Below, piece by piece: positions 20,880 through 29,971 of a stretch of DNA of 64,000 nt. Both the position numbers and the translations under genes were made by a program. The stretch's first letter is position 1; each line of letters starts with the position of its first letter. A model generated the notes under the pieces. The model worked only from the letters and a program-made list of their open reading frames with translations, ran no database searches and was not told where the DNA came from. This DNA comes from Trichosphaerium sp. ATCC 40318 (lineage: Eukaryota > Protista > Tubulinea), in assembly GCA_038496445.1 (NCBI GenBank), contig JALMLS010000448.1:186001-250000 (forward strand). The letters run 5' to 3'.

Positions 20880-23800
20880 TCACACTTTTACTTGTGTAAG
20901 CAGCTTTGCAATCTTTGCAAGTTTAATACGGCTACGTGGTTCTTTTTGCCAACAACCGTCCATTATTTCTAATACATGTTAAAAAAACGCTTAGAAACAA
21001 AGATACAAGGCGTACTAAGGTAAATAGGATCAATATGAAGCATATCTGGGATTGCAGGCTTCAATGCTTGATCACGAACGCGCAAAGCAAGCTCTGCTAT
21101 TGGTATACCACTATGTGGCTTTTCTCGAACCAGTATTTCGTACATTAGGATACTACAAAACGAGTAAGCAACTATTTTTCAAAAGCGATAGGAAACCATC
21201 TACGCGCGTACCCAAGGGACCAAGTATCGCTATATATTGTAAAATCTTTCTTTAAAATAGCTTCTGGAGACATCCATCGAATGGCATATTTGCCATCACC
21301 GACAATATCTTCTGTTCCCTTACGGCGAGTAAAGGTACGTGACATACCGAAATCAGCAATCTTTGGAACGTCTGTAGCGCTTATAAGCACATTACGTGCT
21401 GCGATATCACAATGGATCAATTTTTTATCATGTAGATGCATTAAACCACTAACTATGCCTTTAAGATAGTGTATTGTTACTTTTTCATCAAGAGGTAGAC
21501 TCTCTAACAAAACAAGTTAGTTTTTCTTTTTCTTTCATTATTTTAAGCTTGAGCGCGTACTATCGTAAAGGAGAGTATCTAGAGATCCGTTATCTAAGAA
21601 TTCCATAACCATATAACATTGAGATGACTCTTTAACCTCAGTAAACCCAAAAATCTAGAAACGAAACGTTAACTTGTCGGTTGGAATCTCAAAAAACCAA
21701 ATTGTGGGTACGTACTTGTACTACATTTTCATGTGGTGGTAACGCTACCATGAGTTCACACTCACGCATAACTGAATCAGCAGCAGCAAGAGTAGAAATC
21801 CAGCATTCTTTAATGGCAACTGTATGTTTTTTCTTCAATTTACCTGAATTCAATGTTAGTGCCTTTTGTCGGAAAAAGTTTTGCATAAAAAAACTTGTTT
21901 GTAAAAAAAAATCCAAGTGTTCAACACTGTACTACCTCAAGCTCTTATTAAAAGACGTACCTTTATAAACAACACCAAAAGCACCTCTTCCAAGCTCTTT
22001 CTCTTGTCTCAAGTCATCTACAGCTATTTCCCATGCATTTTGTGATACACGTCCCATCAAAAGCTCATCAAGTGTATTTGAAAGAGCTGATAATCCTTTT
22101 GCTGAACGAAGAGGCTTCTTACTTTGCTTATTCAAAGCACGACGAGGCTTAGCCATTACATTTGCCTTCTTAACCCATTCATCTCTATCTTCTGCAGAAT
22201 GCAAAGCAAAAGAAGTTATTTTTCCCTCTATAAACCGTAAATCAGTATTTGAAGAAAATTGAAAAAAAAAAAACTTCAAAGAATCGACTTTTTACAAACG
22301 AAACGTACTGTTCTTTACAGTAAAATAGTTATGCTGATCACTAGGCATAGCAATACATCCATCTGGAACCTCTGTAGGTCTTTTAAGCTTAGAGAATCTT
22401 CTTAACACTTTAGGATCAGTAACAGGATGAATTACAGCGCCTTGTAGGTTTATTTTATATTTCAACTTGTACGGCGTAACCTAGAAGTAAAAAAGTAAAT
22501 AAACAGCTATTACTTCGCTTAGCGAAAGAGTTTTTCTTCAAAGAAACGTACCTCAATATCTCTTACACTAATAGAAGCGCTAAGTGTCAGAGTACATTGA
22601 AACCATTTCCATAGCTTATCTTTTTTAACAAGAATAAATTCTTGTTGGAGTATTTTTGTAGGTAGCTGTTTTTGTCTTCTCTTCTCCATAATACTTTGCG
22701 TTGCAGTCAATGATGATGTTGTACGTGGTCTATTAAGTACATTCATCAGTCTACCAGAACCCATACGAGGACTAGTAGAGTTTGACCAAGTACGTGAAGA
22801 AAGTCCAGGTGATCTAACAGACTTCCAAGTTGATAGTCTACGGTTCGCTGTTGTTGATGGTGGTGCTGAAGTTTCATGTTCATTCATCCTCATTCTAAAA
22901 TATTCTGGGTTCATAGTAGCATTACTTTGGAGTGAGTCATCTGAACGGATGGTGCAAATAGAAGTAAATCCCATAGGATCCGATTCATGTGGTTCATTAG
23001 CACGTGAAGGAGGGACATACTTCATATCATCTGCTGTTTCTGTATATCCACCAAAAGAAAGAGGAACTGGACGTGTTGGTGGTCCGTTTCTTGGGAGAAC
23101 ACCATAGTCTGGTTCTTGAGCTTTTTTCTGGTTCTGTAAGTTTTGCTCCGCGAATGGTAAGTTAGCGTAGTCAGAAGCCGGTAGTTGGTTATTACTAAAG
23201 CTTGTAGTTGTTTGTGGCAGTTGATCAACGCTAGTGTATTCGCTAACGGTTTGAGAAGCCATTGGAGCTCGAGTGGCAGGGCGTAGATCCTGAGATGGTA
23301 GTGTACCATAATCATCAGAAGGTTGCTGTGTATTCGGGTTCATGTATTCCCCAGTATTGGCAGGAGGGCTGAATTGGCTATGATCAGGTAGCTTACCGTA
23401 GTCTGGGTCAGGTTGCATTGTCGGTCGGGAGACAGAAGGAGAAATTTGTCGTCTAAGAGGAGAAGCTATTGGTCGGGAAACTGAAGGCGATGCACCTCGT
23501 CTAGGTAGTGTAGGAGAGAAACTTTGAGGGCTTCTTGATTGAGCGTGAACAGCAGGAACTGTTACATACTCTGAGGAATCATTTACAGTTCTTGTAGGTG
23601 TGTTGTTTCGGTTCAAACTGCTCTGATTTCTTATAGATAAATCCGAAGGTAGACCACCATACTCACTTTCTTCAACAGGTTGTGGACTGTTTGAACGCAT
23701 ACCAGCGTTATTAAATGTACCACCTCCTGAGATACCATTATTAGAGCCATAGGTACCTCTATTGTTGTTTACATATTCACCACCATTGTCGCTTGGTAAT

Positions 23801-26047
23801 ACGTTGTATTCGTTGCCAATAGTGCTAGGTATTGCAGTGTTTACATTACCTCCTCTCACAACAGTTGGCCTATTTACTCCATAGCCACTAGCACTTGGTC
23901 TTGCTACGTAATCAGTGCTGATATTGGTACTTTGTCTGACACTGCTAGTATTACTAGTAATCTCAGGTAGTGTACGCGTAGGTGGTCCATTACTTGGGAG
24001 AGTGCCATAGTCAGAGTCGGCCATTGGTGTTTGTACACGCTTATTTCTTAAAGGCGAAGAAACTCTTCCATTTGAGTGTGGATTGTAAGTATCTTCAATA
24101 GGTCTTTGAACATAACCTTCGTCGTTCATAGCTGAGGGTCTAGTAGTATAGCCTTCGTCGTTAGCTGCTGTATTGGCGTGGGGAGCATATCTTCCATGAG
24201 ATGGCGAGTAAGTAGCTTCAATAGGTCTTTGAACATAACCTTCGCTTTCCATGCCGGAGTGTGAATTGTAAGTAGCTTCGATAGGTCTTTGAACATAACC
24301 TTCGTCGTTCATAGCCGATGGTCTAGTTGTATAGGCTTCTCCACCAGCTGATGTATTGGCGTGAGAATTGTATCCTCCATGAGTCTGTCCTCCTAAGGCG
24401 TAGGGGTCAGTATATTCCTCGTCATCCCCTCCAAGATCGTAATTCGGCATTACTCCACTATCGTGAGGTAGGTTTCCGTAGTCGTCAGTAGTTTGAGCTT
24501 GGCTTGCATTGCCTCTGTAGGTATCAGTAGTAGGCCTATTAGTGTAATCTGGTCCAGATACTACGCTCTGTCCTGGAACATCAATATATTCGTCAAATTG
24601 TGTCCCGTTATTATTCACCTGATGTTGAGGCTTGTTATTGAAACTAGGTTGACCGTACGGTCTACCGACGTATTCTTGACCAGGGACACTATTATCATTT
24701 GCTTGGGCTTGAACGTTGCCTCCAACGGTTGCGCCATGAGGGAGTGAAGTATACGCATCTGCAGTAGGGTTTGGTTGCGGTCTAGACACAGATACTCGTG
24801 TATTATTCAATCGAGATTGATGTGGCGAATCAGGCGCATTGTGAACTCGCATGGGAGAGTTTTGGTGTCGTTGTTGATTAAGTAGAGCAGGAGCTGTATT
24901 CCCTCTTGGTACAAAAGATGAATCTAAAACAAAACGTGAGAAACAACCAAAAAACCAACCAAACTGATTTCATTGAAAAAAAGTGAAAAAAATTCTCTTG
25001 TCTCTTTGTTTTTTTTCCTTTAAACCCACAAAAAACCCTTGAGAGGATTTACTCTTCTTTTTACAATTTTCAGTGGGTAATAACAATCAAAAAGTTTTAG
25101 GAGTAAATTTTTTTTGGTTTTCTTTCTTTGAAACAAATAAGTACGTACTTGATGTGCCTACGCGTGCACTACCACGTAAAGGCGATTTCGCGTTTGTAGA
25201 AAATGAGTCAGCAAGTCCAGTGCTATTTGCAATATTAACATTTTGTCTCATGTCTACGTTGCTCCTTGTTGATCTCATATTTGCTTGACCTGATCGCCCA
25301 GATGACGGTGCAGGTAGGTTATTATAATCGGATTCTTGTTCCACCCTAGCAGACGCCGAAATAGGAGAGTTGTATCTTTCCTGTGTACCAAAGTTTTGGT
25401 TTTGGTTTTGTGGTATTTGAGCGTTAATAGGTGATGGTAGTACGCCGTATTCGTTGCCAGGTTGTTGGTTTTGCGCTCGTGGTGGTTGTGCAGCGCTGTG
25501 ATGCGAAATTATATTGTTTCCAGTAGACACTGAAACGCTTCGAACGCCGTTACGGTTCACAGGCTTATTGACTTTTCTGTGAGGATTATAAGTACTGGCG
25601 CCTTGGTTTTGCGTGTAGCTTGTCGCTTCTTGAGCTACTTGAGTCGTTTTCGAATTGCTATTGTGCTGGGATCCACCTAGGCGTAAAAACGGTAAGTAAA
25701 AGGCGACTACGGTTGTTTTTCGTTTTATCAGAGACGAATAAATACGGTACGTACCTTTAACTTGCACAACTTTATTACGTGGAAACCACCCTTTCGCTAT
25801 TCGCCCATCAGTAGGCGCTGGCCAAAGTTGCCCAAAAAGCCAACCCTTTATTTCATTAGCCTGTCCACGCGAAACGTTATGTGACGTACCGCCTTTTCGC
25901 CGTGTACGTAAACAAACGACTTATTTTTTAAGGGGAGACAAGGGAAAGTAGCTCCAAGTGTACCGCGGTATTCTACAGTTGCTTGCCACCACGTCCCATA
26001 CATTGCACCTTTCTTTTGCTTTGGTTTTTGTTTTTGTTGTTGTACAT
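20880..26047 (-). CDS. Cytoplasmic tyrosine kinase(-like): SH3-like, Tyr-rich disordered region, PH domain, kinase; multi-exon
   Basis: SH3-like GWLFGQ...GWFPRNKV; PH KINLQGAV...FALHSAEDRDEWVK; kinase LGRGAFGVVYKG, VAIK, HCDIAARN, KIADFGMSR, IRWMSPE, SDTWSLG, CWQKEPRSR. Confidence 0.85.
24085..24370 (-). repeat. Imperfect coding tandem repeats within the kinase (EGYVQRPIE x3; YTTRPSAMND x2)
   Basis: On the + strand, ATAGGTCTTTGAACATAACCTTCG occurs three times, near 24098, 24221 and 24281. Confidence 0.85.
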
Positions 26048-26644
26048 TTTGGTGGTTCTGTGCTCGGCCTCCTGGTAGAGTGTCTTTTTGCGTGTAAATA
26101 AAACGCCTAGCTAAATACCAACCAAAAGCGTACCATAATCTGTTATTACGTTCATCATTGTACGGGGAGTTGGCAAAGGATTACAGCCAAACAACTATAC
26201 AATCAGTTGAATGAAATTACTAGAGTGATATACAACGTTTGTAACCCCTGGTGTTGTAATGTGTAGTGTTTTCGTGCTGTGTTAGTTTGTGAAGATAATT
26301 TGTTTGACGAACGACACAAAGCATTTCACAAGCTGAAATTTCCGGTTTCACTATATGCCTGATACGCTTATTTAGTATCGCTGTGATGATTTACGGAAAA
26401 TAGCCCTAACAGCACTTGTTGTTACAACTTCACAACGGCAGTACAACGCCTGGCAACTGGTAGTATAACACTCTCAAGTATATCTCGCTCATCACAAAAA
26501 GAGGTTTTGTTAGAATATGTTTAAACACTTCACATTGGGTAACTGTTCTTGACAACGCTCATTACAACAGTAATGCGACTTCAACCATAATTGGAGTTAA
26601 GTTAGTTAGTGAAAATTGTTCAGATAGCGTTAGGGGTGCAACAA

Positions 26645-28191
26645 ATGGGTAGTAGCCCTTCCAAGGGTATAAAAAGGTTGCAACCCTTTATTATAGTGCA
26701 GTACCCTCAACTAGAGAGCTTGCATGATAGTATGCTCATCACTGGTGCGTTTGTATAACGGTTAAACTTGATATCAACGTTGATACGGTGATGTACTGTT
26801 TTACTCATTATTAGATGCTACTAAACCCGATAACCCGATCATATTTGTAAGTGGTGCGCGTGGTTCGGAGTGTTGCTCCCTTTTAGGCCAAACAACATGT
26901 CCAGAGAATGACGTATTCTATTTAGATGATTTCGAGCGCTTGACGCTGTATCCTAGAGAGGAGGTTGTTGGCAAAAACTGTAGATTCTTACAGGTACGCT
27001 AGTACAAAGAAATTGCAGACTTGAAAAATGAAACTTACTCAAAATAGGGTCGACACACAAGCAAAGAAAGTGTGACTATTATAAGACAAGCTATTTACAA
27101 TGGTGATAAAAAGGATGTTGTACGGTTCTGAGAACGCCCATCATCGACTCACTGACTCCTAGGTATTGTTGAATTATCGCAGGGATGGTGTACCTTTTTG
27201 GAACAACTTTACAATCCTACCTCTCCGTGCAGGTTCTTACACTTTATGTGAAATCTTTTCTGTAATGTTGCATAGATCCGGAAGATGAGCAAAGGGTAAC
27301 CCATTTTATTGGTATCCAAAGAGATATTACACCTATTGTGCAAGCAGATAAGGAAATGGTAAATTGGAGTCCAGTAGAAGTAGCTTTGTGGGTTGGTACG
27401 TGAGAGTTTTCGAACAAAAAAAAACTTGTTTTGCTTATAAATATGTTTTATAGAGCACCTTGACATGTGGCCTTATGCTGTTGCGTTTATAGATAATAAT
27501 GTCACAGGGAATAGATTGTTAGTGATGAGTACGTTTTTAAAAATAGTGCAATGCAATAACTTACACTAAAAAGCGTTCCAAACACTAATTGCTATGGGCT
27601 TGCCTGCGACAGTTGCAAAAGATCTCCTAGTAGTATGTTACTCACCTTCATATGTTTAATGAAGCCTAACAGGTTCCATAGGAGATTAAGAAAGTTACAC
27701 AAGATGGTACAGTATCGTCAAATGCTTTTGCACCACGGTTGCAGCGTAAGACTTATTTGTATTTTTTGAAGGAAATTAACAATTGATGCTTATTGCTTTG
27801 TTTTCGCATTAGATAGGTTTGTTGCAAAAGCACATTTTAGAAAGACAAAACGTATATTTTTTGTACTGGAACGTGATACCCTCGCAGTAATTATAAAGCG
27901 GTACGTCACACTTAGGTAGGTAGATTGGTAATTTAGTTTCTTTAGAATACGCACAGAATTCCCAGGAAAGTTCTCAACGTATAAACTGCGTTTGGTTAAA
28001 GCGCAGGGTGAAGGATATAAAACTATGACAGACTTTGAACTCTCAGAAGTAATGTACGACTGTTTTTTGGAACGAAAATTACCTTATTTGTAACCAGGAA
28101 AAAAATGACAGCCAAGTGCATGTTAACAATGTGTATAAGTGGAAAAGACCCAGTTTTTAATATATCTCTTGAAATAGACACATTTGATTGA
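26645..28191 (+). CDS. LOV photosensor - SAM - PB1-like protein (about 290 aa, many short exons)
   Basis: Spliced LOV: SMLITDATKPDNPIIFVSDDFERLTLYPREEVVGKNCRFLQGRHT...LLNYRRDGVPFWNNFTILPLR...FIGIQRDIT. SAM: WSPVEVALWVEHLDMWPYAVAFIDNNVTGNRLL. PB1-like: FVAKAHFRKTKRIFFV...YKLRLVKAQGE. Confidence 0.85.
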
Positions 28192-28443
28192 CATCTAGCT
28201 GCGAACAAAAACAAAAGGAGGCTAGTAAAGTAGTGCTAGCCAAAAACTATTTTTTCACTAATTCGAACTTGTATATTAAATGCTGCTAAAATGAATTGTA
28301 CAGTTGTTTTCAATGCTCGGAATTAGTGGAACAACGGACTTACGACAAAATATTAAATTTCACCTCTTTTGGCTTGTAGAACCTTCCAATTTCTCCACTC
28401 TGCGGGCAAATATATTCCACCATTTTACAATCAGTACTATCGA

Positions 28444-29971
28444 ATGACATCAACTCCTTCAGAAAAGAATACGAACATAACCGGAGCTTTTAAGCGTAAA
28501 GGTAATAGCTAATCATTTAAATTGTACTCTAACTCTTAAAAGCTGCGTCATTTCGTAATCACATCACTGCAGACGGCAGTTCTGGTTTTCCAGCTGAACC
28601 TGATCGCTATCACCTTTACATAGGTACTTACGCTTTTTATCAACCTCCTAACGCGTTCTAGCTCGTGCTTGTCCTTGGGTATGCTATTTTCGCATGTAGC
28701 GTTTAGAATTTGTTAACCCATAACTAGGCGCATAGAACTATGATGGTTAGAGCGTTAAAAGGTTTGTCAGTTAATTTTGTTGTCATGTCACGACAAACGC
28801 TAACAAAGCCTCCTTAGGTCTTGAAAAAATAATCACCGTGTCTATTGTTGAACCCTTTATGGGTAATAAGGGTTGGACATTCAATCCAAGCCTTCCTGAT
28901 TGCACAGATGACCCAGTTTTTAACGCTAAACACATCAGGCAAGACTTTTCCTTTTTAACTCTTTTTGTGACATTGTTTTTTAGTGAAATCTACTTTGCTG
29001 TTGATCCTGACTACTCTGGTCGTTATACAGTACCTCTTTTAGTAGATAAAAAAGTAAGCATTCTCACCAAACTGTTGTTTTCTTAACACCTCTTCGCTAA
29101 CATTTGAAACTAATGTAGCAAAAAACTATTGTAAACAATGAATCTTCAGAGATTATTAGAATGTTTACAACTGCTTTTGATAGCTTAGAAGGTATTCCAA
29201 AACTAGATCTATACCCAGAAGATTTGAGGGAGAAGATAGATGCTGTCAACGAGTGGGTATGAGTAAAGTCTAAATGTTGAATAACATGTTTTTTTAACTG
29301 AATGCAAATTAGGTTTATCCAGATATCAATAACGGAGTATACAAGTGTGGATTTGCTAGGTAAGTAGTTTTTTGGTCTCTCATGGGTATCAACGTTTTTT
29401 TTAGAAGCCAAGAAGCATACAATGCAGCTGTAACTGCACTATTTTCGGCCTTAGATAAAGGTGCCTTTATTGAGTTTAAAAATAGAGTAATGCCAACTAA
29501 CTTGTATTATAGCCGAAGAAATCCTCTCTAAACAACGCTATTTGACAGGAAATCAATTCACAGAAGCTGATCTTAGATTATGGGTAACATTGATTCGCTT
29601 TGATCCTGTGTACCAAGGTATAAACAATTCTTTTGATTGAATGTTATTTCTCATTTTGCTAATTGTTTTTGAATCATAGTCCACTTCAAGTGCAGTGCAA
29701 AGAAGATCACGCAGTACCCTAACATGTGGAACTTTGTCAAAGAGATATACCAAATGAAAGGTGTTGCTGATACATGGAACCTAAAAGCAACAAGAGATCA
29801 CTACTTCCAGAGGTACTGCCAAAAGAACTTTTTATTGTTTTTTTGATAAAGAAGCTAAGTATGTTCAATAGTCATACGTCTATCAATCCTTTTGGTATCG
29901 TAGCCGCTCTCCCGTCTGATTTTGATGTTGCATCTCCGCACGACAGGACAAAGTTCCCAGCAAAGTCATAA
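28444..29971 (+). CDS. Glutathionyl-hydroquinone reductase (YqjG/ECM4, GST Xi class), multi-exon
   Basis: FRNHITADGSSGFPAEPDRYHLY, ACPWAHR, YSGRYTVPLL, IVNNESSEIIRM, INNGVYKCGFA, TEADLRLWVTLIRFD, INPFGIV. Confidence 0.9.

Follow-up and report, generated by a model that had tools for sequence, protein, structure and literature searches.

A predicted twelve-exon gene for a compact LOV-SAM-PB1 protein, a candidate light-gated assembly factor, in Trichosphaerium

The LOV-SAM-PB1 gene

The window analysed here is a stretch of 64,000 nucleotides from Trichosphaerium sp. ATCC 40318 (contig JALMLS010000448.1, positions 186,001 to 250,000), and all positions given below are those of the window. At 26645-28191 on its + strand, a gene of 12 exons is predicted to encode a protein of 315 residues composed of a LOV, a SAM and a PB1 domain. 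The G+C content of the window is ∼37%, and no long open reading frames (ORFs) lie in the region of this gene. A three-frame reading of 26500-28400 showed short coding segments alternating with AT-rich spacers, likewise short, that open with GT and close with AG. An original prediction, made by a model that had read only the letters of the DNA and a list of its ORFs, had proposed that short exons at this place splice in frame through canonical GT-AG sites into a hidden photoreceptor. The assembly bears this out, with an ORF that is opened by the ATG at 26645-26647 and closed by the TGA at 28189-28191, the same start and stop as had been predicted. The motifs quoted at the time are all found in the product: GKNCRFLQG, LLNYR (N97), FWNN (N107), FIGIQ (Q131), WSPVEVALWV, NNVTGNRLL, MGL and FVAKAHF. 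The absence of any enzymatic domain from the ORF was also borne out.

The 11 introns are short (43-72 nucleotides) and all have GT-AG ends. Retention would bring in a stop codon at nine of them, and seven have a length that is not a multiple of 3, intron 5 among these, being free of stops but frame-shifting. Only intron 2 (72 nucleotides, stop-free) could be read through in frame, and its retention would add 24 residues within the LOV core, an insertion found in no homologue. The donors (26745-28111) are GTACG or GTGCG in seven of the 11 introns, in preference to the common GTAAG, and nine of the acceptors are TAG; this preference may help to model other hidden genes of the same genome.

For the last intron, two choices of splice sites keep the frame. 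In solution B, the intron occupies 28062-28111 with the donor gttttt, the stop lies at 28191 and the product has 315 residues. In solution A, the intron occupies 28049-28097 with the donor gtaatg, nearer to the local consensus, and the last exon, 28098-28160, ends with TAA to give 305 residues. The profile of the protein family described below reaches to position 78 of its 85 positions with solution B and only to position 47 with solution A, and B also aligns further with the homologue P0126. Thus, homology slightly favours B whilst the donor consensus favours A, and solution B, with its end at 28191, is taken as the somewhat better prediction and used throughout. Coordinates are collected in Table 1.

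Table 1. Exons of the predicted LOV-SAM-PB1 gene and the genes that flank it
Feature	Position	Strand	Content
Exon 1	26645..26744	+	MGSSPSK, N-terminal cap helix and first LOV strand; aligns from residue 1 with P0126
Exon 2	26815..26853	+	LOV, DATKPDNPIIFVS; family hidden Markov model (HMM) match at 26811-26849
Exon 3	26926..26993	+	LOV, DDFERLTLYPREEVVGKNCRFLQ; Cys65 = TGT 26979-26981, N64, R66, Q69
Exon 4	27048..27119	+	LOV, GRHTSKESVTIIRQAIYNGDKKDV; R82, counterpart of AsLOV2 R467
Exon 5	27163..27232	+	LOV, VLLNYRRDGVPFWNNFTILPLRA; N97, N107
Exon 6	27276..27395	+	Last LOV strand (THFIGIQRDIT, Q131), 7-residue linker and SAM start (WSPVEVALWV); family HMM 50.6 bits
Exon 7	27454..27528	+	SAM helices 1-3, EHLDMWPYAVAFIDNNVTGNRLLVM
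Exon 8	27574..27629	+	SAM helices 4-5, TFQTLIAMGLPATVAKDLL
Exon 9	27682..27745	+	End of SAM helix 5 and short SAM-PB1 linker
Exon 10	27813..27900	+	First half of PB1: strands 1 and 2, helix 1, RFVAKAHFRKTKRIFFVLERDTLAVIIK; K227 = AAA 27827-27829
Exon 11	27946..28061 (alternative end 28048)	+	PB1 strands 3 and 4, helix 2, IRTEFPGKFSTYKLRLVKAQGEGYKTMTDFELSEVMYD; degenerate OPCA, TDFEL half only
Exon 12	28112..28191 (alternative 28098-28160, other frame)	+	PB1 strand 5 (CMLTMCIS) and 15-residue tail; in solution B, TM...NISL matches P0126
Divergent gene	21172-25767 (5' end may reach ~26000)	-	Separated from the LOV gene by at most 0.9 kb; N-terminal region long and of low complexity, with numerous repeats of the D/E-Y-x-x-L-P type; Tyr/Ser-Thr kinase domain, one exon of which matches PK_Tyr_Ser-Thr with 89.8 bits
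Next gene	~28446-29100	+	Starts ~255 nucleotides past the stop of the LOV gene; exons GAFKRK..., DGSSGFPAEPDRYHLYI, ...YSGRYTVPLLVDKK

Homologues of the predicted protein

Exon 6 alone, 40 residues that span the LOV/SAM junction, was searched against 1.84 billion representative proteins and found P0001 with an E-value of 1.7e-9 and 69% identity at the same residue positions. P0001 is a complete ORF of 321 residues from an MMETSP marine protist transcriptome; a protein of 420 residues, P0126, belongs to the same cluster. The alignment of the spliced 315-residue product with P0126 starts at Met1 and covers 285 residues with 58.6% identity (E = 2e-113, for a database size set nominally to 1e9 residues). 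For a product whose exons were joined by prediction, such a match to a transcriptome protein is far beyond chance. It is because of this homology support that the locus is accepted as a real, intact and intron-rich gene of 12 exons, its splicing being predicted from the sequence. An exact search of JGI metagenome contigs with the exon 5/6 junction gave no match, and no paralogues of the gene were found within the window.

P0001 (MMETSP Transcript_17279) and P0126 (Transcript_17280) are identical up to ...NISLPDLEL, after which P0001 ends with SKL and a stop and P0126 runs on into a PAS domain. They are two products of one locus, and the difference between them is compatible with an origin by intron retention or by alternative splicing.

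The LOV-SAM part of the predicted protein is 36-46% identical to that of seven further proteins, which come from Filamoeba (P0013), Thecamoeba (P0051), a EukProt transcript (P0057) and short JGI environmental contigs (P0012, P0036, P0116 and P0131). In the case of P0036, the contig is 1.5 kb long and the gene is a single uninterrupted ORF. Since P0001, P0126 and others derive from transcriptomes, LOV, SAM and PB1 are carried on one mRNA in the relatives; the possibility that LOV and SAM/PB1 are transcribed separately, named in the original prediction as one that would undo it, is thereby answered at the level of the family. An alignment-based family search added one protein. The SAM-PB1-PAS part of P0126 matched only itself when used as a query, and the search for related loci confirmed none. 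Searches of the ESM Atlas by features and by shape returned generic PAS or SAM clusters only, with no LOV-SAM-PB1 architecture in clusters of at least 50 members, and the family is therefore rare in public data.

A metagenome contig of 179 kb (ENA ERZ929103 k127_18918) carries, at L001:1001-6862, an uninterrupted ORF of 1953 residues (P0003), in which a LOV-type PAS_9 domain is followed directly by a SAM domain (1077-1138) and later by a PAS domain. P0003 is far larger than the predicted protein and has the LOV-SAM junction in common with it.

The family is marked by an MGxxx[S/T] start and a LOV domain that leads directly into SAM and then PB1, and the 315-residue protein shows each of these features. 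It is a PAS-less, compact member of a family that is otherwise built as myristoyl-LOV-SAM-PB1-PAS and whose named members are amoebozoan.

Domains of the predicted protein

The LOV domain of the predicted protein is complete. P0001 and P0126 match Pfam PAS_9 with 63-93 bits, the 63 bits of P0001 extending over positions 3-102 of 103, and the 315-residue protein aligns with P0001 across the LOV domain without a gap. Even single exons carry the signal: exon 3 matches PAS_9 at profile positions 20-40 (E = 0.02) and the family HMM with 50.1 bits, and exon 5 matches PAS_9 at positions 65-85 (E = 0.062) and the family HMM with 37.3 bits. Solved LOV domains, including that of a bacterial histidine kinase, AsLOV2 and those of phototropins, YtvA and aureochrome, match P0001 with E-values of 1e-24 to 1e-30, about 1e-29 for AsLOV2 and others, and the C, R, Q, R, N, N and Q of P0001 align with theirs. 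The roles of the residues that contact the flavin and form the adduct are known from LOV structures. In the predicted protein N64, C65, R66, Q69, R82, N97, N107 and Q131 are all present, at positions that are invariant or nearly so in an alignment of 17 sequences. The photo-adduct cysteine of the original prediction is thus found at Cys65, encoded by the very TGT codon that it named, with all the flavin contacts kept. Accordingly conserved in its sequence, the domain is predicted to bind flavin mononucleotide (FMN) and to form a Cys65 adduct in blue light.

The SAM domain, which had been proposed to follow the LOV domain directly, is well supported and starts seven residues past the LOV core. 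Against a family SAM profile that was built without P0001, the closest homologue, residues 143-205 reach 46.9 bits. The version of this profile that includes P0001 matches solved SAM domains (liprin-beta, DGK-delta, Shank, SARM1 and caskin) with E-values down to 3.5e-14, and six relatives exceed the Pfam cut-off for SAM_1 or SAM_2. In the AlphaFold model of P0001, the block forms five helices (149-158, 162-170, 175-180, 183-190 and 194-212) with a predicted local distance difference test score (pLDDT) of 84-96, mostly 88-96.

For the C-terminal region, the best matches of the family profile in the PDB are all PB1 domains (PKC iota with an E-value of 1.2e-4, Bem1, NBR1 and MEKK3). The Pfam PB1 profile scores 27.6 bits in P0012, above its cut-off of 23.6, and 14-19 bits in four other relatives, and has no match in P0036 or P0116. 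The AlphaFold model of P0001:222-312 has a pLDDT of 81 and a strand-strand-helix-strand-strand-helix-strand order, which is that of PB1. With this model as query, the top 23 Foldseek matches are all PB1 domains, with template modelling (TM) scores up to 0.78; by VIA-align, which is independent of Foldseek, PB1 domains take the first 12 places (Z = 12.9 to 9.8), the first ubiquitin-like domain reaching Z = 9.5 and one unannotated mitoribosomal chain 9.7. The fold is transferred from the P0001 model to the 315-residue protein by alignment, and the first half of the PB1 region in this protein is closely conserved with P0126.

The original prediction had described a PB1-like end that keeps its basic lysine and has a degenerate acidic OPCA motif, and this description holds on both counts. 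The lysine of strand 1 (K227 in FVAKAHF) occupies a column that is invariant in the family and aligns with the lysine of the PKC iota and Bem1 PB1 domains. In the OPCA stretch, LVKAQGEGYKTMTDFELSE, the first acidic cluster is missing and only the TDxEL-like end (TDFEL) is retained, so that it does not amount to an OPCA motif. We are fairly confident that the C-terminal module of this copy is a PB1 domain, although a divergent one whose assignment comes mainly from the nearest homologue; with its lysine and degenerate OPCA, it is of type B at best.

N-terminus and C-terminal end

All nine distinct N-termini of the family, that of the 315-residue protein included, start with MGxxx(S/T/G). The protein begins with MGSSPSK, and thus has Gly2 and Ser6 followed by the basic residues K7, K10 and R11. 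An MGxxx(S/T/G) start with basic residues is the classical signature of N-myristoylation, and the proteins of the LOV-SAM-PB1 family are probably anchored to the membrane through this predicted modification.

At the other end, all other family members of ∼420-490 residues have a second PAS domain after PB1, which in P0126 scores 49 bits with Pfam PAS. The 315-residue protein has none: its stop lies 15 residues past PB1. In the 259 nucleotides between this stop and the next gene (28192-28450), similarity to the PAS domain of P0126 was no better than in shuffled sequences (p ∼0.3), and there was no match to the family HMM. A hidden C-terminal PAS domain, for which YFFTNSN and FSMLGISG seemed by eye to be echoes, was rejected, as Smith-Waterman scores were about those of shuffled sequences and no consistent splice path was found. 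The end of P0001 is a few residues away from the point where the 315-residue protein stops. The PAS-less form therefore exists in two ways, as this gene and as the shorter product P0001. The conserved N-myristoylation motif and the absence from this copy of the second PAS domain of its relatives are points that go beyond the original prediction.

Possible function and alternative explanations

The reading that we favour, with some confidence, is that of an intact gene for a LOV-SAM-PB1 protein of 315 (or 305) residues, of the N-myristoyl type and without a catalytic domain, whose output is light-gated assembly or recruitment. In the proposed mechanism, blue light would give rise to the FMN-Cys65 adduct in the LOV domain. 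Gln131 and the beta-sheet would relay this change to the N-terminal cap helix that flanks the domain and to the directly attached SAM domain. The head-to-tail binding of SAM, of PB1 or of both would then be altered at the membrane. The outcome could be self-assembly or, more likely, docking onto PB1 partners that bear an OPCA motif, such as paralogues or PB1 kinases, because a PB1 domain with only the lysine cannot self-polymerize by the canonical acid-base contact. Some relatives, P0012 for example, do retain an acidic OPCA-like cluster. The output would thus be assembly or recruitment rather than catalysis. The full-length AlphaFold model of P0001 has a predicted TM score (pTM) of 0.79, which suggests that LOV, SAM and PB1 pack in a defined way, and the idea of light-controlled assembly or scaffolding that was put forward in the original prediction appears reasonable for a protein with this predicted set of domains.

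Several points weigh against this reading. The splice junctions and the expression of the gene are predictions. The full-length Pfam and AlphaFold results come from the homologue, which is 55-59% identical, the 315-residue protein itself having been tested by local alignment and by profile. P0001 scores 15.9 bits with Pfam SAM, below the gathering cut-off of 23; with Pfam PB1 it reaches 16 bits (E = 0.012) over profile positions 8-81 of 84, below the cut-off of 23.6. In the 315-residue protein, PB1 is poorly conserved in its second half, which is unlike that of P0126, the protein scores only ∼2 bits against the family PB1 profile built without P0001, and a local hhalign alignment to the PB1 region of the relatives gave P = 5e-4 and a probability of 31%.

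A more specific and rather doubtful version of the favoured reading starts from the PAS-less end. The genome would encode as a separate gene the short form without the second PAS domain, which a related organism makes as the shorter of two products of its LOV-SAM-PB1-PAS gene. With its SAM domain and its lysine-only PB1, the 315-residue protein would cap or adapt, under the control of light, a network of paralogous LOV-SAM-PB1 proteins anchored to the membrane. If so, blue light would determine how long SAM/PB1 polymers grow or what they are composed of, which would make the system a case of natural light-gated polymerization and a compact optogenetic module.

The same end invites a different explanation, in which an ancestral LOV-SAM-PB1-PAS gene lost its C-terminal PAS domain and left a paralogue that is truncated, decaying or silent and has no function of its own. 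That the other members of ∼420-490 residues carry the second PAS domain whilst this gene stops right past PB1, that the second half of PB1 has diverged and that the last intron is ambiguous would all be expected of such a copy. However, the ORF is intact over 12 exons with 11 intact GT-AG introns, and the flavin and adduct residues are kept together with the MG motif. A related organism also makes a PAS-less protein of 321 residues, P0001, with a similar end point, and no PAS remnant was detected downstream, which argues against a recent truncation. We therefore regard decay as unlikely.

The favoured reading, in which assembly is itself the output, may also be set against one in which the protein is the detachable light-sensing subunit of a kinase, a kind of 'split phototropin'. 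Here, SAM, PB1 or both would dock onto a kinase, possibly the product of the divergent neighbour, and the output would be phosphorylation. A Tyr/Ser-Thr kinase gene does lie head-to-head upstream at a distance of ∼0.9 kb or less, and among the PDB entries that the PB1 profile matches best are PB1 domains of kinases, namely PKC iota, MEKK2/3 and MEK5. Yet neither PB1 nor SAM was detected in the pieces of the neighbouring kinase, and the adjacency could be due to chance if the genome is as rich in kinases as that of Physarum, for which an extensive set of tyrosine-kinase and two-component signalling proteins is described (PMC4758236). The split arrangement is thus improbable. Finally, the idea that the C-terminal module is no more than a ubiquitin-like beta-grasp of a generic kind, such as the Ras-binding or ubiquitin-like (UBL) type, without PB1-like binding, accommodates the degenerate OPCA, the weak sequence signal of the subfamily and the Z-scores of 8-9.5 that ubiquitin-like folds reach against the model, but it is very unlikely in view of PB1 ranking above ubiquitin-like and Ras-binding domains in both structural aligners and in the profile search, of the invariant lysine of strand 1 and of a position that is the same as that of clear PB1 domains in the relatives.

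Comparison with known LOV proteins

The original prediction had allowed that the LOV-SAM-PB1 architecture might be unreported, and this does not stand. LovA of Physarum polycephalum (Phypoly-transcript_01902), published in 2015, has the domain string RasGAP-PB1-PAS_9-SAM-PB1 with the NCRFLQ motif and was proposed to be an unconventional blue-light receptor (PMC4758236). It is listed among the constitutively expressed photoreceptor genes of Physarum (preprint 10.1101/2025.05.10.652879), and a survey of PB1 domains describes their combination with SAM or PAS in protozoa (PMC7051960). LOV-SAM-PB1, with or without the second PAS domain, also occurs in Filamoeba, Thecamoeba and MMETSP transcripts. 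Since the core architecture has been in print for Physarum since 2015 and relatives are present in public transcriptomes, the discovery is an incremental one. What sets the 315-residue gene apart is that it is the most compact form of the family, with no second PAS domain.

By its published domain string, LovA shares with the 315-residue protein the PAS_9(LOV)-SAM-PB1 core and NCRFLQ. It differs in its N-terminal RasGAP domain and extra PB1 domain, and hence has an enzymatic output, whereas the 315-residue protein is without both of these and without any catalytic domain. An N-terminus of the LovA type is absent here, the ORF starting at its MG only 28 residues before the LOV core and the DNA upstream belonging to the divergent kinase gene.

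P0001 and P0126 are the closest in plan: starting at residue 1, they stay in register with the 315-residue protein through the MGxxxSK start, LOV, SAM, a short linker and PB1. P0126 differs from it by a strongly different second half of PB1 and by the second PAS domain, for which the gene in the window, with its stop, leaves no room before the next gene. The LOV-SAM-PB1-PAS proteins of ∼470 residues (P0013, P0051, P0057, P0012, P0036, P0116 and P0131) have the MG start, NCRFLQ, the LOV-SAM junction and the PB1 lysine in common with it. They have, however, a SAM-PB1 linker of 60-90 residues and the C-terminal PAS domain, in contrast to the short linker and PAS-less end found here, and the acidic OPCA-like cluster that some of them keep (e.g. 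P0012) would allow self-polymerization, whereas the OPCA of the 315-residue protein is degenerate.

With the characterized LOV receptors (phototropin, aureochrome, YtvA, VVD/WC-1, ZTL and the RGS-LOV protein BcLOV4) the protein shares the LOV core and the flavin contacts. Their effectors are a kinase, bZIP, STAS, zinc finger/PAS, F-box/Kelch and RGS, in place of which the 315-residue protein has SAM and PB1. The C-terminal flank of its LOV domain is a 7-residue linker into SAM, compared with a long J-alpha helix. By analogy with BcLOV4, association with the membrane may be part of the output.

In the literature searched, no bench characterization of the LOV-SAM-PB1 family was found. If light does change the assembly of SAM or PB1, the family would represent a new output logic for LOV domains, assembly instead of catalysis or DNA binding, and would give molecular access to how amoebae and slime moulds respond to blue light. 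With its 315 residues, the protein is the smallest complete example of the family and convenient for expression.

Neighbouring genes

The gene that follows on the + strand (Table 1) was also inspected. Pfam searches with its read-through ORF pieces gave no support for a glutathione S-transferase (GST) identity; by eye, its exons look like those of a Xi-class GST of the glutathionyl-hydroquinone-reductase type.

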